Source of the DNA: Guillardia theta CCMP2712
Lineage: Eukaryota > Protista > Cryptophyta
Assembly (NCBI RefSeq): GCF_000315625.1
Contig: NW_005434630.1
Coordinates: 434,001-498,000, forward strand
Length of the DNA stretch: 64,000 nucleotides
Direction of reading: 5' to 3'
Shown: piece by piece, positions 1-8,278 of the stretch
How positions within the stretch are numbered: position 1 is the stretch's first letter
Layout: every line of letters starts with the position of its first letter
The notes under the pieces: model-generated
Seen by the model: only the letters and a program-made list of their open reading frames with translations
The model's database searches: none
What the model was told of the DNA's origin: nothing
Program-made: the position numbers and the translations under genes

Positions 1-3000
1 GACGGTCTTAGGATGCATCGCTGCCTTTTCCTGCTCGTTGGAATCGCCCAGCTGCTCCTCAGACGTGAGGATGGAGATGGTGACGATGGTGTTGCTGGAG
101 GAGGAAGGAGAGGAGTCGAAGGAAGTGACTTCAATCAGCTCGTTCGAGACCTGCAGTACCTCCGCTAGCTCCAGCTTGATCAGGCGCATCTGGTGCGCCC
201 TGCCCACCAGGGACTTTGACACGAACTGCTGGAACGGCTGCTTGACTGTGAGGGCCAGCTCCGTGGTGTCGCGCGTGAAGCTCTTGATCTCTCTAGGGAG
301 CTTGCTCTTCCTCTTGAGGTCCGTGGACATGGCGCTGGCCTGTCTTGCCACTGTGTAGCCGATCCTCCTGCCTTCAAACTCTACCTCATCCCCGTCATTC
401 AGGGCCAGGATCTTGTCCTTGTACAGATCCGTCACGTCCCAGGTCAGGGCGTGACGAACCTTGACGATCTCTGGGCTCAAATTTTTGAGGAGGAGTCGCT
501 TCAGGTAGGCGTGCACGACGACGGAGGAGGTGGAGGGAGATTCTGGGTCCAGCGCGATGTAGTTCTCTCCCAACTTGAGCTCGATGCTCTGAGGAGTAGC
601 TTCCTCAACGGTCGCTTCCGTCTTGTGCAGCTTCGGGAGGAGGACGAAGGGCGATCGCATCAGCTCCTTGACCGCCTTGTCCGCCGACCTCGAGGGCCCC
701 TTCCTCTTGTCCTCCATCGCCATGGCCCCTAAGCTCTGGTTCTTCTTCCTCATGGATTCGAACATATCCTCCACCTTTGCCCCCTCTTCCTCGTCCCTGC
801 GCTTGAGGTAGTCCGACAGCGACTTCTGCTGCTTCTGCTTCTCGTCCGGCCCCTCCACCATCATCTCAGTGCTCCACTCCGTCCACCTCTTCTCCTTGAG
901 GTCCGACATGACCCGCAGCTGCAGGCGGTGAGAGCCTTTTCCCAGCTTGATCTTCGCCTGGAAGATCTTTTTCTGCCTCTTGTTGACCTGCAGCTGGACC
1001 TGTTGCTGGGATATCCCGTCGATCATGAACTGGTAGTGCGTGATGGACTGGATGTACTCGCCGGCGTCGAACCCTGGGGAGGCAGGGACGGTCCACCGCA
1101 GTACCATCTCGTCATCGTGCATGGACATGATCTCGAGCGCCTTGGGGGCGAGCAGAGCTTTCTTCCTGTCCTGCCCGTCGTGCTCGCTGAAGTTGGAGAA
1201 CATGGGATCAAAGTCCGTGATGCCCAGGTCCCGCTGCAGCTGCTTCACCGCCTCCCTGCTCGTCTCTGCTATCTTGATCTTCTTCAACTTCTCCTCCTCC
1301 CCCATTGGATCGTGCAGCACAACTCCCTCCACCTTGTCCTCCAGCTCTGCTGCCGTCTTCTCCAGCTTGTCGCGCAAGTATTCCGCGAAGTTCCCCTTGG
1401 CGATGTCCTGCAGCTCCTTGATGTTGAACTTGCTGTTCTCGAGCACGACGGCGGAGCAGAGGGTTGGCTGCTGCTCGAGGATGCGCTGGATGAGAACCTT
1501 CTTGGCCTTGTCGTTGAGCATGTACACCCCAGAACGCCAGAGGAGGAAGCGGATGGCGTAGGAGGAGAACTGAAGAAAGGTGCTGCCCATGGCCATGCAG
1601 AAGAAGAAGAAGCGAGACTGGGAGGAGAAGAACTGATTGAAGTTGTCGCCTCTCTTGGAGAACTCGTCGTTGGCGTTGCCGAAGATGCGGAAGAGACCAG
1701 CGGCGAGAATGATCGCGAGGTTGGTGAGGATACTGAGCGCGACTAGGATGAAGCCCTCGTACAACCGCAGCTCCCCTAGGAAGGCCTGGAGGTACTGCGT
1801 ACCCCCGACGTATCCTCCGTCTCCTCGGGTGAAGAAGGAGCCGATGAGGTTGCAGAAAGTGCGGAAGACGTGGAGGTTGAAGATGGCGTCCTTCATGGAG
1901 TAGATGGAGGAAGGGGCCTTGTAGCACAAGAGCGTCCAGAACTCGACGGAGGCGGTTAGGATGAGGATGGCAAGAAACTGGAAGCCGAGCACGGGCATGG
2001 CAAGCCAGCGGAAGAGGCAGGTGCAGTACTCGACTGGGCAGAAGTTGCAGGCGTCGATGCCGAACCAGAAGTAGGCGAAGACGATGAGACGAGAGCTGAG
2101 CTCGGCGAAGCGGTAGAGGAAGAGGACGACAAGCTCCATCTGCTCCAGGGAGAGGAAGGAGCACCTGCGGAAAGTCATCCTCATGGTGTGGAACTTGGAG
2201 ACGTCGAGGGTGACGGAGGTCTGGGCGGAGGCGATCATGGCGAAGAAGATGGTCACGACCTGCAGGACGGGAGCTAGAGGAGGAAGAAACTTTGAGCCGA
2301 ACCAGTACTTGCTCTCGTGCTGCATGCACGCGGTGATGTGCAGCAGCGCCGTGGGAAAGAGGACGAAGAATCGTTCGAGGTTCTTGGCGAGGAGGAGGAA
2401 GGGAACATCGCGGATGGCGGCTGTGATCTGCATGTGGGAAGCAAACCAGGGGGACTCCTGATGATGCCGCATCCGGTTCCGGAAGATGAGCTTGAGGAGG
2501 AAGGAGGAGAGGAGGAGGAAGAACCAGATGCAGTACGAGCAGATGATCATGAGGTAGTAGAAGGCATGGCCGGTGATGCCGCAACGGGCGCACCACTGGA
2601 AGAAGATCCTTGAGTCGGCGGTCGTGAGGGGTCCTCCCTGCCTTACCATCCTGTCGATCTTTTCGTAGTTGAAGATGAGGACGATGTTGAGGACGAGGTA
2701 GACGAGGGAGGAGGACAGCAGCGCTACGTGCGACCACAGCGTCTCCCGATGGGCGCTCCTCACCTTGGAAGCAGGGGCGATAATGGTCTTGATGATGGCT
2801 CGGTTCTTGGTGCAGTCCATCGGGTACTCTCCCCTCCTGTTCCTCGTGTGCTGTGCCCTCCCCTGCGCTCTGCAAACCAGCTCGATCACCCCCGGCAGGT
2901 TGTTGGAGGCAGCGGCGATGTGTAGAGGCGTGTTGCCCTCCTGCAGGAGGAGCGGATCGTTAGCTGTGACCGTTCTCATCCTCATCCTCGTCCTCATCCT

Positions 3001-4873
3001 CGTCCTCACTTTCTCCTGCCTCCTCCTCAACCCCAATTCCTCACAACCTACTCGCTTCCTCGTCCTCTCCTCCCCTCCTACCTCATCCTCTTGCCAGACG
3101 CCCTTGGGATGCTGATCGGCGAGAATCTTGAGAACGTCGAGGGCCTAACATGCCATACATCTCAGCTTTGGACCTTTCCTTCTTGTATCATCCGCCTTCT
3201 CTCTTCCCTCCCCCACTCCCACCCGAACTTTCTCCTCCTCCTCCCACCAACACCTTCCTCCACCTCCGGCTCTTTCTCTCCACTTCCTCTTTCTCTCACC
3301 TGTGGCGCACAAGTACACGCGATGATATGCAGGGGGAGCTGTCCTCGCTCGTTGGGGATGTAAGCTGTCTCAGGGTGGAAGGCAAGAAGCGCCTTGACGA
3401 TGTTGAGAGCTTGAGAGTTCTTGAGCACGACGTCCTGCGAGCATGCGCGATGCAGCATGTTGCCGATGTTCCCCGAGAGCCGCAGGGCCCCGTCAGGATA
3501 CGCCGTCGTCACTGCCGCCACCACCATCCCCACCGTCGAGGAGGTGGACATGAAGGCGATCTCCACAGGAAGCAGCCCGTTCTCGTCCTCAGCTCGCGCT
3601 GCCCCAGAGTTCAGCTGCGCCAGTTTCCTGACCATGTCCCCCGCGTCGTCGCTCGGGTTTGCTGCGGCGATGTGGAGGGGAAAGCGCATGGCATAGTCCC
3701 TGTGCCTCGGAGAGATAAGACGCTCCTGGTTGAGGGCAGCAGAGACCAGCAGGGCTCCGACTGGCCCACGGTTGGCGGCAGCGATATGGAGGGGCAGCTG
3801 TCGAAGACTGTCTTCAATGAGGACAGCAGGTTTGAGACTCGACCTGGAGAATGGGAAGTGAGAGAGAGGATGAGGGAGAAAAAGAGATAGATGAGATGAG
3901 ATGAGATGAGATGAGATGAGATGAGATGAGATGAGATGAGATGAGATGAGATGAGATGAGATGAGATGAGATGAGATGAGATGAGATGAGATGAGATGAG
4001 ATGAGATGGGATGAGATGAGATGAGGTGAGGTGAGGTGAGATGAGGTGAGATGAGATGAGATGAGATGAGATGAGATGAGATGAGGTGAGGTGAGATGAG
4101 GTGAGATGAGGTGAGATGAGATGAGATGGGATGGGATGGGATGAGGTGAGGTGAGGTGAGGTGAGGTGAGGTGAAAAAGAAGATAGAAGCAAGGAGTGCG
4201 GTAGATTTCGATGAAGCATCGATCATAAGAAGCGATTTGACGGAAGATGACGTATGAGTGGGAACGAGAGAAAAAAGGAAACGGAGAGAGGTCGAGCGAG
4301 GGTGAAGGCAGCTGAAAATCATGAAGGAGGAGAAAGAGAGGAGGGGCAAAAATGACAAGCATTGGGGAGAGGGCATGTGGGAAGGGAAGAAGAGGGGGGG
4401 GGGGGAGAAAAGGAACCTTGAAGGGCCAGCTAACAGCTCAAGGCACATTCCCACGGAGACAGAACTTTCGTTCTGCATGAGGATGTGAAGAGGTCTTCGC
4501 TCGAGTACAAAGGCAGCATCGTGGCACATTTCCCCCGTCCCAACCTTTCTTCCGTACTGCAAGGTATGCGGGTGTGAGAAAGAGGAGGAAGACGAGGAGG
4601 AGGAAGACGAGGAGGAGCAGGAGGGAGAGGGGGAGGAGCGGAAGGATGGGGAGGAGGACGGAGCGTACCGGGATGAACTCGTTGTCGCTTTCAACCGCGC
4701 GAAAGAGTTTGGCGACAGGGGAGAGCGAGAAATCCTCGAGGTCGAACACGTACCGCAGGTACCTTGCAGCTTCTGAGTTGCCTTGGCTTGCTGAATACCT
4801 GAGTAGTACATACACATTAAATATCTTTCTTGTAGTTGCTTTTCTCTCAAAAAATTGCACCCATCAGAGCTCT

Positions 4874-4928
<55 letters not shown>

Positions 4929-5513
4929 CTCCCTCCCTCCCTCCCTCCCTCCCTCCCTCCCTCCCTCCCCTCTTCATCATCCTCCTCTTCCCATCCGTCG
5001 TTTCCTCTCTCACCAGTTCAGGACATGTCTGGACTCCCAGGACTCGTCCACGTCATCTTCCAGGCCGTCAAGAAGCTTCAGGACAGCTAGCGACGCGAAC
5101 TCAGAAAAACAAGCGGAAAAAAGGAGAGGGGAGGGAGAGGGAGAGGGAGAGGGAGAGGGAGAGGGAGAGGGAGAGGGAGGAAGCGAGAGGGAAAAAGAGT
5201 TGGGATGATGAAAAGGTTTGAGGTGCAGGAAATGCAATGAGGGAGTTGAGGTTTGCTGTTTTACCTCCATTCAGCTCCTCGATCAGTGCGCTCGATCCTC
5301 CGAAGAAGCGCTTTTTTTCCATCTTGATGATCGATTGAAGTTTGGTCTCCTTGTTTCTCCGCATCATCCTGCTGCTGTCTGCTGCTGCCTTCCAGGACCG
5401 TAAGAAAAGACCTGCGAGCCAGTCAGGGAAAGCAAGGAAGGGAAGCCACTGAGCGATGGTGAAGCAGACCCGACAGTCAGTCAGTCAGTCAGTCAGTCAG
5501 TCAGTCAGTCAGT

Positions 5514-5545
<32 letters not shown>

Positions 5546-7709
5546 AATCAGTCAGTCAGATGAGAGGTGGGCAGGCGACTGAGCCGAAGGTAAGTTACCT
5601 CGGAGGAGGATCTGAGGGAGAGAAGATGAGAGGGAGGAGCGAACGGCATGCCCCTGAGCGATCTGCATTTCCCTCCCTGCCTGCTAGCACGTCAGCCTCC
5701 CTCGAACATCAGAGCAATCAGTATTACTCTGAATCCGCTCCCCCTGCCGTCATGACCGTACCCAACGGGGAAGGCGGCAAGCAGCATGTTTGACATGCGG
5801 CTGACAGCTTGCTTGTAGGTCAAGGCGATCTTCTCCCACTGAAATATGAACAGATGAGCAGCCGAACATCATCGTTGGGAGGATTCTCATTATCAACATC
5901 GAATGTTGCTCATTCTCTCCTCGCCCCTTTCCTTTCCTCCTGCTCGTCCTCCTGCCTCCCCTCCTTGCTCCTTGCTGCTCTCCACTCGAAGTCACAGCTC
6001 CTTGCTCCCTCACCTGCCCCGCCGGCGGATCTTTGGAGCTGTAGATTCCCGTGGTCGCGTCGAAGCTCAGCTCCGTCTTTCTGACCGTGTGCAAGACGCA
6101 CTCGGGAGCGACGAGCAGGATCATCTGCCGAGCTGTTGCTGAGCAGATGCAGGAGGAGGAAGCGTGGGAGTACCTTGAGGGCTCGCAGGGCACTTTCTTT
6201 CCTCCCGTTCATGTTCATGAGGACGTAGTCCTGGTCGGAGACTTCATTCGGATCATGTCGAGGCAGTTCACTCACCACAGGGAGCAACCCGTCCATGTCC
6301 GGTTGCATCGCACCCTCTGGGTACCCGAAGTCCTCGTTGAGGAGGGAACGAACCATCCGATGGACGTTGGGATTCATCTCGGTATGCAGCCTGAAGGTTG
6401 TGTCCTGCGGATTGGTTTAGGAAGGAAAAAGAAGGGAAGGGAAGCGAGGGAGAGAGAGGGAGGGAGAGGGAGTGAGAGGATGAGGTACGATCAGGAGTGC
6501 TATGAGGTTTGAGGAGGAGCCGGAGGGAATCGTCTGTCACCTGACGGCTTGTGGGCCCTTCATTCCTACAAGCATAGTGCAGGGCAAGCGAGCCAAACCG
6601 ATCCTTCTGACGGGCAGCGAACCTGTTGGTCTTCAAGAGCTCCTCCACTGCCGAGGTTGCGTCAGCCACCTCCTCCTCTTCTCACTATCAAGGACGCACC
6701 TATCAAGGGCGCGATCTCGTTCTCATTCATAGCCGCCACGTGGATGGGAAACAAGCCAAACTCGTCGGCCTTGCCGATCTCCCAGGGACGGGAGGAGAGC
6801 CTGTACTTCACGTCATCCAGCCGATCTCCAGCACAGATGTCGCAGAGGGAGGAGCGCTCCAAGTAGACGAGGTATCGTTGCGACTCCATGAGCTTCAAGA
6901 AGGTACGGAGGAGGCGAAGTCCGATGGCTATTCGAGAGATCAAACGAGACCCCGTCGCCGCGTTCCTGGCTGTCGATGCTCCGGAGGTTGAGGAGGTCTG
7001 GATGGCACATTCTTCTGGATAGTTGGCCGCAGACATGACAGGAGGATGAGGAGCTTTGATGATGGCGTAGTCATTGATGATCTTGTAAAAGGTCAAGATA
7101 AAGGACAGCAGGACTATAAGAGCGTCGAAAAGGTTCCAACGATGCTTCAGGATCTCAAACACCCCGAACGCTACCATCCTCGACAGAAGCTCCAGCGCAA
7201 AGAGGGAGATGATGATGGAGGAGATGGCTGTCTGGGGCACTGAATCGCGACCATAACAATCTGAGCTCAAATCTCAGCAAGCGAGCAGGCAGGGTTGGGG
7301 TACCTTTCTGACTCTCGGATATTCCATACGTGTATATGAGAGTGGAGGTGACGTCCACAATTACGAGAGAGATGATGAGGATGTTGATCTTCAAGACAAC
7401 ATCGCGGCTCTGAGCACATGGTCACAGGAAGTAGAACACCTCGTACCACAGAGACCTCAAGTTTCTTGGCAAGCCAAACTTTCCAACGCCCTGAACAATG
7501 GTTTCTAATGAGCACATTTGCTATGATAAGAAGTACCCCTGGGTTTCCGCTCTGGTTCAGAAACAGGCACTTGGACTGCACCAGGTTCTCCCTCAGCTAC
7601 AGTCTCCTGGCAAATGAATGTCAGCAAAAATTACTGAGCATCCTGTATAAACCTGAGGCTTCGTAGCCTCCTGAATGTCTATCTGATCGTTCTGAATCGT
7701 GGATGTCAT
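1..7709 (-). CDS. Large multi-exon membrane protein: N-terminal voltage-sensing domain (S1-S4), many ankyrin repeats, XK/Xkr-family multi-TM domain, FN3-like domain and coiled region; 3' end lies beyond the window
   Basis: VSD: ILIISLVIVDV (S1), IISLFALELLSRMVAFG (S2), WNLFDALIVLLSF (S3), SRIAIGLRLLRTFLK (S4). These run in one ORF (6662-7270) into the ankyrin motif DEFGLFPIHVAAMN. Further LPLHIAA / GSLALHYAC / GNTPLHIAA repeats occur at 6640-2880 and are joinable by GT-AG introns. The exon from ~2940 to 1 is open and reads RDVPFLLLAKNLERFFVLFPTALLHI, LQVVTIFFAMIASAQTSVTLD and VLFLYRFAELSSRLIVFAYFW (XK-like), then VLRWTVP...YQF...LQLRVMSDLKEKRWTEWS (FN3-like). Start codon is approximate. Confidence 0.75.
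3889..4174. repeat. Intronic pentanucleotide microsatellite (ATGAG)n with GTGAG/ATGGG variants
   Basis: Directly visible ~285-bp array. Confidence 0.97.
4876..4970. repeat. Intronic (GCT)n followed by (CCCT)n
   Basis: Directly visible. Confidence 0.95.
5125..5178. repeat. Intronic (GAGGGA)n
   Basis: Directly visible. Confidence 0.95.
5473..5559. repeat. Intronic (CAGT)n/(CAGA)n
   Basis: Directly visible. Confidence 0.95.
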
Positions 7710-8278
7710 ACTTCCCTGTCACAGGTTCTGACACCCTGACAAGGCCGAGGTTTGTCGACAAGGCAGTTCTGCAGTTTCAAACGAGTGCTGTCGGTGATAC
7801 CATATCTTTGTCCGATAGCTGGACAACAAAAGGAAAGAAAGTGATGCTAAGTTTCCAAGCTATGGCTCCTCCGTTGCCCTGCCTGCTCCCTGCTCCCTGC
7901 TCCCTGCTCCCCCTCCCCTTCTCCTCCATCTTCTTCCATGTTCGTTCTTCTCCGACCGCCACTGGGGAGATATATCTGTCAACTGCACGTCAAAAACAAC
8001 TTCTTTTTTAGGCTACTCAAAAGTCCTTCTAAAAGTTCAAATTTGGATATTTATTTTGAAATACTAGGCGCAAATGTACAATCAAACCACTCTCTCCAAG
8101 TACATTTTGATCAGTAGGCGCTAATCACTTTGGGAGGAGGAGCAGGAGCGGCAGAAGCAGCAGCAGGCAGAGCAAGAGAAGCAGAATGCCGATGACAGCA
8201 TACCATCACACTCCCGTCTTTGGATCCTGCTGAACAAAGTCCTTATCGCAGGGACAAGGACGGGAAGTTGTCGGTAGA

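Follow-up and report, generated by a model that had tools for sequence, protein, structure and literature searches.

A candidate voltage sensor, ankyrin and XK-fold fusion protein encoded in the genome of the cryptophyte Guillardia theta

Voltage-sensing domains (VSDs) without a pore are, to our knowledge, known to drive few effectors: a phosphatase, a Na+/H+ exchanger and, in Hv1, their own proton path. A stretch of 64,000 nucleotides from Guillardia theta CCMP2712 (contig NW_005434630.1, positions 434,001 to 498,000; hereafter the window, whose own coordinates are used below) raises the question whether such a sensor has also been joined to a membrane domain that folds like the lipid scramblases of the animal XK/Xkr family. 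An earlier note, made from the sequence alone, had proposed for positions 1-7709 a fusion of a voltage sensor, ankyrin repeats, an XK/Xkr-like domain and an FN3 domain, and had suggested a voltage-regulated scramblase. We analyzed this locus by gene modeling, profile searches, structure prediction and comparison with relatives from other lineages.

Six-frame translation of positions 1-8200 places the coding strand on the minus strand. The locus is described here as one nuclear gene of a Guillardia-like cryptophyte, encoding a membrane protein of ~2,400 residues. From its N-terminus the protein comprises the VSD, an S4 extension, ankyrin repeats, a helical linker of ~250 residues, a second ankyrin block and an XK-fold domain of 421 residues. 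C-terminal to this domain come a juxtamembrane helix that is conserved, a coiled-coil-like segment, an FN3-like domain and a further conserved region; a BIR domain lies past the window edge. With 4 + 8 membrane spans and all soluble parts on the cytosolic side, the topology is consistent in itself.

The voltage sensor and its junction to ankyrin repeats

The four helices of the sensor are S1 (7388-7323; INILIISLVIVDV), S2 (7228-7160; SLFALELLSR, with the motif F..E...R), S3 (7138-7076; WNLFD) and S4 (6949-6887; SRLISRIAIGLRLLRTFLK). S1 is encoded by exon 4 (7304-7409), where it reads INILIISLVIVDVTSTLIYTYG and is aligned with S1 of three relatives (L010, L009 and P0016). Exon 5 (7260-6700) encodes the S1-S2 loop, S2, S3, the S3-S4 loop, S4, a helical S4 extension and the first ankyrin repeat (6769-6722; ADEFGLFPIHVAAMNE). 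This exon matches the Pfam family Ion_trans (PF00520) over S2-S3 with 31.3 bits against a cut-off of 25 (E 1.5e-7). Among PDB sequences searched with phmmer, the sensor matches Cav3.3 (6e-12), Cav3.1 (1.5e-11), Nav1.8 (5e-4) and Ci-VSP (4.5e-3), and the voltage sensors of Cav3.2 and Nav1.7 are likewise among the matches of exon 5.

Direct reading of S4 gives R-IAIGL-R-LL-R-TFL-K, that is, three in-register arginines and a lysine. One register position, where a second arginine would be expected, is hydrophobic (Ile or Val). The charge-transfer centre is composed of the S2 Phe and Glu and the S3 Asp, and S4 has basic residues at every third position with this one exception. The S2 Phe/Glu/Arg, the S3 Asp and the S4 R/R/R/K are kept in four lineages (alignment A5, including P0016, P0017, L010 and L009) at 50% overall identity, which argues for selection on sensing. 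The sensor is a complete Cav/Nav-type S1-S4 domain with an intact charge-transfer centre, and it is pore-less.

No S5-P-S6 pore follows S4 in exon 5 or in the uninterrupted open reading frames (ORFs) of P0016 and P0017, and no phosphatase family, PTEN-like or otherwise, was returned by Pfam scans of the exons. The passage from S4 through the helix into the first ankyrin repeat lies within a single exon, which leaves no place for a pore domain or a phosphatase. In P0016 and P0017, which represent a further lineage with 53% identity, S1-S4 and the ankyrin repeats are contained in one uninterrupted ORF. The four-helix sensor that runs in-frame into ankyrin repeats with neither pore nor PTEN phosphatase, as the earlier note had described it, was thus recovered, including the Ion_trans match that it had suggested looking for.

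The sensor domain could also be a relic or a membrane anchor that has lost voltage sensing, or it could conduct protons or ions like Hv1, and the rest of the protein would then be independent of voltage. The Ile in R-I-A-I-G-L-R-L-L-R at the place of the expected second Arg speaks for this explanation, as does the coupling distance of ~650 residues, for which there is no precedent. However, the charge-transfer residues are retained across the four lineages, and Hv1 too functions with three arginines (general knowledge). We regard a relic or self-conducting sensor as improbable and take the domain as a putative working voltage sensor below.

Every lineage invariably has two extracellular cysteines, one located in the S1-S2 loop (DCYGRD, 7260-7243, minus strand) and the other in the unusually long conserved S3-S4 loop APHPPVM..YPEEC, within YPEEC (~7020-7006, minus strand). 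These residues may bridge the two loops by a disulfide or make up a ligand site of the sensor. At position 7162, in the exon coding for S2-S3, a base of a GGGG run is missing from a single DNA contig of low depth (run X2), which is most likely a sequencing error rather than an allele.

The membrane domain and its relation to the XK family

A stop-free frame of 1048 codons (3144-1) contains the last ankyrin repeat, a multi-transmembrane (TM) domain of 421 aa (2772-1510, minus strand) and the tail. The ankyrin repeats end ~20 residues before TM1, and the in-frame passage from ankyrin into a multi-TM domain is as previously proposed. The motifs quoted in the earlier note for this domain, AKNLERFFVLFPTALL and LFLYRFAELSSRLIVFAYF, are both present on the minus strand.

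The structure of the TM domain was predicted with AlphaFold2 without templates, from an alignment (A1) of cryptophyte-type relatives only. The model contains eight TM helices and two shorter inserted helices, arranged as two halves of four TM helices, each half with one inserted helix. The top PDB match in Foldseek is human XKR4 (probability 0.93, E 0.49). Alignment of the entries on Foldseek's list with VIA gave Z scores of 17.6 and 17.4 for XKR8, 17.0 for XKR4, and 16.6 and 16.6 for XKR9, and the next entry reached 7.7. The XKR structures matched (7dce, 8xej, 9boj, 7p14 and 7p16) cover model residues 3-416, with 263-282 residues aligned at 11-14% identity. In an exhaustive VIA comparison against 48,161 representative chains the same three proteins lead (XKR8 17.4, XKR4 17.0, XKR9 16.6; 267-275 residues aligned over model residues 3-413), followed at Z 11.3 by a four-helix bundle that matches only model residues 12-194. 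By ESM-Atlas features, the nearest clusters are XK-related (score 0.91, 205/256 features shared, 33/40 in that family set), and all of them are animal.

Two helices carry the motifs that were compared with characterized XKRs. Of all helices of the domain, TM3 (motif AKNLERFFVLFPTALLH, 2338-2388, minus strand; alignment A3, 12 invariant columns) shows the highest conservation and is the most hydrophilic; its K, E, R, F, P and H are invariant. In XKR9, TM3 is conserved, hydrophilic and kinked at PQL (PMC8298096). The block K..ERF..LFP.AL.H..AC..H of the cryptophyte-type family keeps the proline invariant and has T, S or L in place of the Q of PQL, so that a conserved, hydrophilic TM3 with a kink-forming proline is found here as well. 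TM5 carries LFLYRFAELSSRLIVFAYF (2068-2124, minus strand). With a profile of 71 columns (A6) over the TM4-end/TM5 block, the best PDB match was human XK (9yg5_D, residues 206-232) at a marginal E of 0.3. The HMMER alignment places the family-invariant R, E and R on XK R215, E218 and R222. The study of Xkr8 takes its R214 to correspond to an XK residue that is altered in McLeod syndrome (PMC8500837). The Arg that TM5 contributes to the R214-D295 salt bridge (XK R222, a McLeod syndrome site) is matched in the family, at the same E of 0.3.

Several results weigh against this assignment. The confidence of the model is moderate, with a predicted local distance difference test (pLDDT) of 60.3 and a predicted template-modeling score (pTM) of 0.54. 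A quick Atlas shape search with the TM domain found nothing. The TM domain of the window has no match at E <= 1 in Pfam, including the XK-related family PF09815, and none at E <= 10 among PDB sequences. Searches of the PDB by phmmer and hmmsearch with the TM domain, with alignments A1, A3 and A7 and with a distant relative (P0012, see below) gave nothing significant.

The likeness to XKRs could then be an artefact of a mediocre model, or a convergence among helical bundles, and the domain an unrelated new family. The pLDDT of 60, the lack of a significant hidden Markov model (HMM) match and the blank Atlas shape search are in keeping with this, and VIA's own note states that a chance Z of ~14 is possible for helical models. 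On the other hand, the XKR entries stand alone at Z 16.6-17.6, cover the whole domain and are separated from the next entries by 5-10 Z, and the model was built template-free and from cryptophyte-type sequences only. Two independent sequence pointers, the language model and the TM5 profile to XK, also agree with each other. An unrelated family is therefore very improbable. On the strength of the structural model, the TM domain very likely adopts the XK fold, and it is probably a true homologue of the XK family. Of the XK reading in the earlier note, the fold match to XKR8, XKR4 and XKR9 stood, as found with AlphaFold and Foldseek, which it had suggested, and with VIA, whereas the HMMER match to PF09815 that it had suggested seeking did not appear, and the PDB sequence searches were not significant either. 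A TM domain with neither profile nor structural match to XK, which the note had named as overturning the idea, is thus not what was seen.

The domain has the size (~330-420 aa) and fold of the XK-related proteins (XKR8, XKR9, XKR4, XK/XKR1 and CED-8; PF09815). It shares with them a polar conserved TM3 with K-x-x-E-x-F....P and the invariant Pro (PMC8298096), R..E...R in TM5, and cytosolic termini at both ends. In contrast to them, it falls below the Pfam threshold, has 11-14% identity in the structural alignments, lacks acidic TM1 residues like the D26/D30 pair, has, judged by motif spacing, a hydrophobic residue at the E141 position and no recognisable caspase-site tail, and is embedded in a ~2,400-aa VSD/ankyrin/FN3/BIR protein of a cryptophyte.

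The family of this TM domain is rare: when 1.84 billion representatives were searched exhaustively with HMMER, there were only 14 relatives, mostly fragments. Word-based protein searches that started from the TM domain or from its profile gave a fragment from the cryptophyte Hanusia and P0012 as the only matches, and the window's own annotated protein was absent from their results. P0012 (L002:1567-2754, on an unrelated Logan contig; 388 aa) is the most distant member and a stand-alone one, with neither VSD nor ankyrin repeats in the 1.5 kb upstream. The membrane domain thus also occurs outside the fusion. Against PF09815, P0012 had the best score of any family member, 7.4 bits with a threshold of 24.8 (E 2.5), with TM3-TM5 on HMM positions 135-221 in the right register.

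Gene structure and conservation of the domain order

Upstream of the frame 3144-1, the locus shows numerous short open segments whose translations resemble ankyrin repeats and voltage sensors, and these have to be connected by splicing. A gene model was built from splice signals, phases and homology to relatives. It comprises 16 exons running from 7709 to 1 on the minus strand, is stop-free, encodes 1824 aa up to the window edge and runs past it. All 15 introns (37-573 nt) are GT-AG and phase-compatible, which bears out the claim that the exons between sensor and membrane domain splice canonically. The earlier model contained the sequence features but missed two conserved 5' exons (7606-7537 and 7490-7447).

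Scanning JGI metagenomes for the pattern of the TM3 block gave eight loci. By tblastn, S1, S2-S4, both ankyrin blocks, the linker exons, the TM domain and the tail are collinear and on one strand in L009/L007 and in L010/L011/L012. The order of the parts is kept in at least three further lineages, all on metagenome contigs, so that the search for the same architecture elsewhere, which had been suggested as a check, was successful. Moreover, L010 carries a single open frame of 606 codons (2783-4600). It extends from the S3-S4 loop through S4, the ankyrin repeats and the complete linker as far as the beginning of the second ankyrin block, and the small window exons all map in order onto it. The one-strand order in other lineages and the open frame of L010 together indicate one gene. 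The C-terminal half is joined in the same way. In P0003, from the Tara contig L001, ankyrin and TM1-TM4 share one ORF and a BIR domain is found further downstream, and a sequence of Hanusia phi (a cryptophyte of the Geminigeraceae; P0001, EukProt, 75% identity) begins where TM8 ends, spans the FN3-like region and reaches a BIR domain.

The locus could also hold two adjacent genes on the same strand, one for VSD-ankyrin and one for ankyrin-XK-FN3-BIR, with the exons between them being chance open frames; separate genes had been named beforehand as what would overturn the fusion. Transcript evidence does weigh on that side. Over 4176-7800, RNA run X5 gave 2 reads (7080-7321, in or next to the VSD exons) and X8 gave 0, with no junctions; runs X1 and X2, from 2011, consist of genomic DNA contigs that are colinear through the introns. 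The matches of single linker exons to L010 are weak (E 0.025-0.06), and the Hanusia sequence spans the C-terminal part only. But two genes with chance open frames between them would not account for 15/15 phase-compatible GT-AG junctions without a stop, for linker exons lying in order on an L010 frame that starts in the VSD, or for an order kept in at least three further lineages. There is only a slight chance of two genes, and a one-gene VSD-ankyrin-XK-fold architecture is highly probable.

The individual exons (all on the minus strand) are backed to different degrees. Exon 1 (7653-7709), with the putative start ATG at 7709-7707 and an in-frame stop three codons upstream, is the least certain. 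Exon 2 (7537-7606) encodes an N-terminal cytosolic segment, AVQVPVSEPERKPR, which is kept in L010 and L009 (VVPNSEPARS...). Exon 3 (7447-7490; RWKVWLAKKLEVSV) aligns to RQKWKSDLAEFLSV of L010. The intron between exons 3 and 4 has only 37 nt, and an alternative acceptor is located at 7389/7388. The uninterrupted ORFs of P0016 and P0017 confirm the junctions between exons 4 and 5 and between exons 5 and 6. Exon 6 (6541-6647), with the ankyrin sequence LLKTNRFAARQKDRFGSLALHYACRNEGPTSRQ, is 82% identical to L010, and its junction is backed by the ORFs of P0016, P0017 and L010. Exon 7 (6174-6404) ends the first ankyrin block and was placed by tblastn to the L010 frame. It includes an in-frame 45-nt GTGAGT..CAG segment (~6275-6231) that is not in L010 and could represent either a very short intron or an insert specific to the lineage.

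The linker is encoded by exons 8 to 12. The frame change at exon 8 (6014-6124), after an intron of 49 nt, is backed by homology to the open frame of L010. Weak collinear matches to L010 were found for exons 9 (5728-5838; E 0.025) and 10 (5265-5448; E 0.033), both with fitting phases. Exon 11 (5014-5086) was placed by splice phases and by-eye similarity to ELNLVIESLHDWL of L010, and exon 12 (4669-4798) has a collinear L010 match at E 0.058. The second ankyrin block starts in exon 13 (4417-4556; ERRPLHILMQNESS), which matches L007, L009 and L010, and continues in exon 14 (3300-3843), which is 52-60% identical to L001, L010 and L009. Exon 14 matches Pfam Ank_5 with 31.0 bits against a cut-off of 27, and its L010 homologue matches Ank_2 with 44.3 bits, so that the ankyrin assignment made by eye is borne out by HMMER. 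Exon 15 (3082-3144) encodes the ankyrin helix ALDVLKILADQHPKGVWQEDE; P0003 and L010 read ...APQALEIMEDLI...LGNTPMH here without the two introns of the window. Exon 16 (1-2940) encodes the last ankyrin repeat, the XK-fold domain and the tail; it is stop-free and passes the window start. Two introns contain simple repeats, a (GAGAT)58 microsatellite in intron 13 (3884-4174) and a (CAGT)22 repeat in intron 9 (5474-5559).

Candidate functions and the C-terminal tail

As a working mechanism, the XK-fold module would be a strongly diverged relative of the XK/Xkr scramblases of animals and would handle lipids at the membrane. The movement of S4 would be passed via a rigid ankyrin array to the cytosolic face of this module. 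In animal XKR8 and XKR9, a C-terminal plug at the cytosolic face controls activity. The BIR/FN3 tail might then supply a second input that depends on a partner or a protease, with the BIR domain recruiting the protease or another partner. We favour this explanation as a whole, the architecture together with a lipid-handling XK-fold module driven by S4 via ankyrin, by a small degree over its competitors taken together.

That the protein itself scrambles lipids is a more tentative proposal. Mutation of D26, D30, K134, E137, E141 or R183 abolishes scrambling by Xkr8 (PMC8500837). Beyond TM5 the equivalent residues in the family are assigned by motif spacing only; on this basis, the TM3 Glu and the Lys three positions ahead of it have the K134/E137 spacing of Xkr8. 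Three features count against the proposed function. TM1 of the family carries no acidic residue and has an invariant mid-helix Asn instead (Glu in P0012). The position four after the TM3 Glu, which corresponds to E141 in Xkr8, is hydrophobic. The spacer between S4 and the effector comprises ~650 residues and is unlike the short linker of voltage-sensing phosphatases (VSP). In addition, several animal XKRs have no demonstrated scramblase activity. Lipid scrambling by this protein is possible but doubtful. The strongest form, voltage-gated scrambling in which S4 opens an XK-type path through the ankyrin lever and rapidly collapses lipid asymmetry, is unlikely.

The same residues bear on a different role. 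The XK-fold module may be no scramblase but a membrane adapter or anchor, as human XK is for VPS13A, with the ankyrin, FN3 and BIR parts serving for docking and the VSD tuning recruitment or contact sites. The sole XK-family sequence match is in fact to XK, deposited as 'Endoplasmic reticulum membrane adapter protein XK'. Protein-interaction modules are abundant, and the TM1 acidic residues essential for Xkr8 scrambling are absent (PMC8500837). However, the XK-VPS13A pair is itself thought to involve scrambling by XK, the title of a 2026 preprint calls XKR1 a scramblase, and a VPS13-binding element was not identified in the window protein. We consider an adapter role rather unlikely, and an S4-driven lipid-handling module is retained as the preferred explanation.

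Known systems offer partial parallels. Ci-VSP/TPTE likewise places a pore-less S1-S4 domain N-terminal to a non-channel effector, and Ci-VSP is among the sequence matches of the sensor as given above. In contrast, the window protein has no PTEN-like phosphatase, its effector is a second membrane domain, and ankyrin repeats and helices over ~650 residues take the place of a short basic linker. SLC9C1 is a precedent for a VSD that controls a transporter-type membrane domain in one polypeptide (general knowledge), but there the VSD follows the transporter and is accompanied by a cyclic-nucleotide-binding domain, whereas here the VSD comes first and ankyrin follows. Hv1 is a precedent for a three-Arg VSD working without a pore domain (general knowledge), but its S4 signature RxWRxxR is absent here.

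We found no paper that joins Xkr8 with a voltage-sensing domain or describes this architecture, in agreement with the earlier note, and nothing relevant on XK-related or voltage-sensing domains in Guillardia or other cryptophytes. An XK-fold lipid-handling domain would be a new effector for a pore-less voltage sensor, and voltage control of lipid asymmetry would become testable with one cloned protein. If voltage-gated scrambling were true, this would be the first voltage-gated lipid scramblase, in a free-living alga. For the scramblase field, the family offers a natural XK-fold variant without the TM1 acidic pair.

The tail following TM8 was modeled as 502 residues from alignment A4, with an overall pLDDT of 55. 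Directly after TM8, a helix (1509-1474; RAKKVLIDLI / KAKKVLIQRI) is among the best-conserved non-membrane stretches in all homologues. By analogy with the C-terminal plug of XKR8/XKR9, KAKKVLI may be a candidate regulatory plug. Residues 121-220 of the model (850-1149, minus strand; pLDDT ~70-80) form a seven-strand beta sandwich, which Foldseek aligned to FN3 domains with E 1e-4 to 1e-3 and probability 1.00, including those of Ihog, EpoR, RIM-BP and chitinase. The FN3 part of the proposed fusion is thus upheld by fold, although Pfam gave no sequence match to FN3. The remaining part within the window (1-849, minus strand; LKLGENYIALDP...VHAYLKRLL...) is conserved in P0001, L001 and L010, and its model is of low confidence. 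An FHA-like reading of the region LKLGENYIALDP...GDEVEF was considered and rejected, given this low-confidence model and no Pfam match.

The BIR domain is known from orthologues only, as the window ends before that part; the Hanusia sequence extends ~600 aa further, to the BIR domain. The BIR matches (PF00653) are above the Pfam cut-off of 22.9 bits in P0001 (35.8), L001 (30.2) and L010 (25.7), as in BIR proteins of the IAP type, although the orthologues carry only one BIR, placed at the end of a membrane protein. Caspase-linked cell-death circuitry includes BIR domains as well as the XKR scramblases of animals. The XK/Xkr-fold domain is hereby placed outside animals, in at least five cryptophyte-type lineages, and joined to a BIR domain, a finding of relevance to how the apoptotic 'eat-me' machinery arose. 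If true, the XK/Xkr fold and its BIR link to cell-death-type modules would be older than animals. In the Tara contig, an EF-hand follows the BIR domain (L001:6070-6160, residues 632-658 of a 705-aa ORF) with a Pfam E of 5e-5, just below the cut-off, which hints at a calcium input in some lineages.

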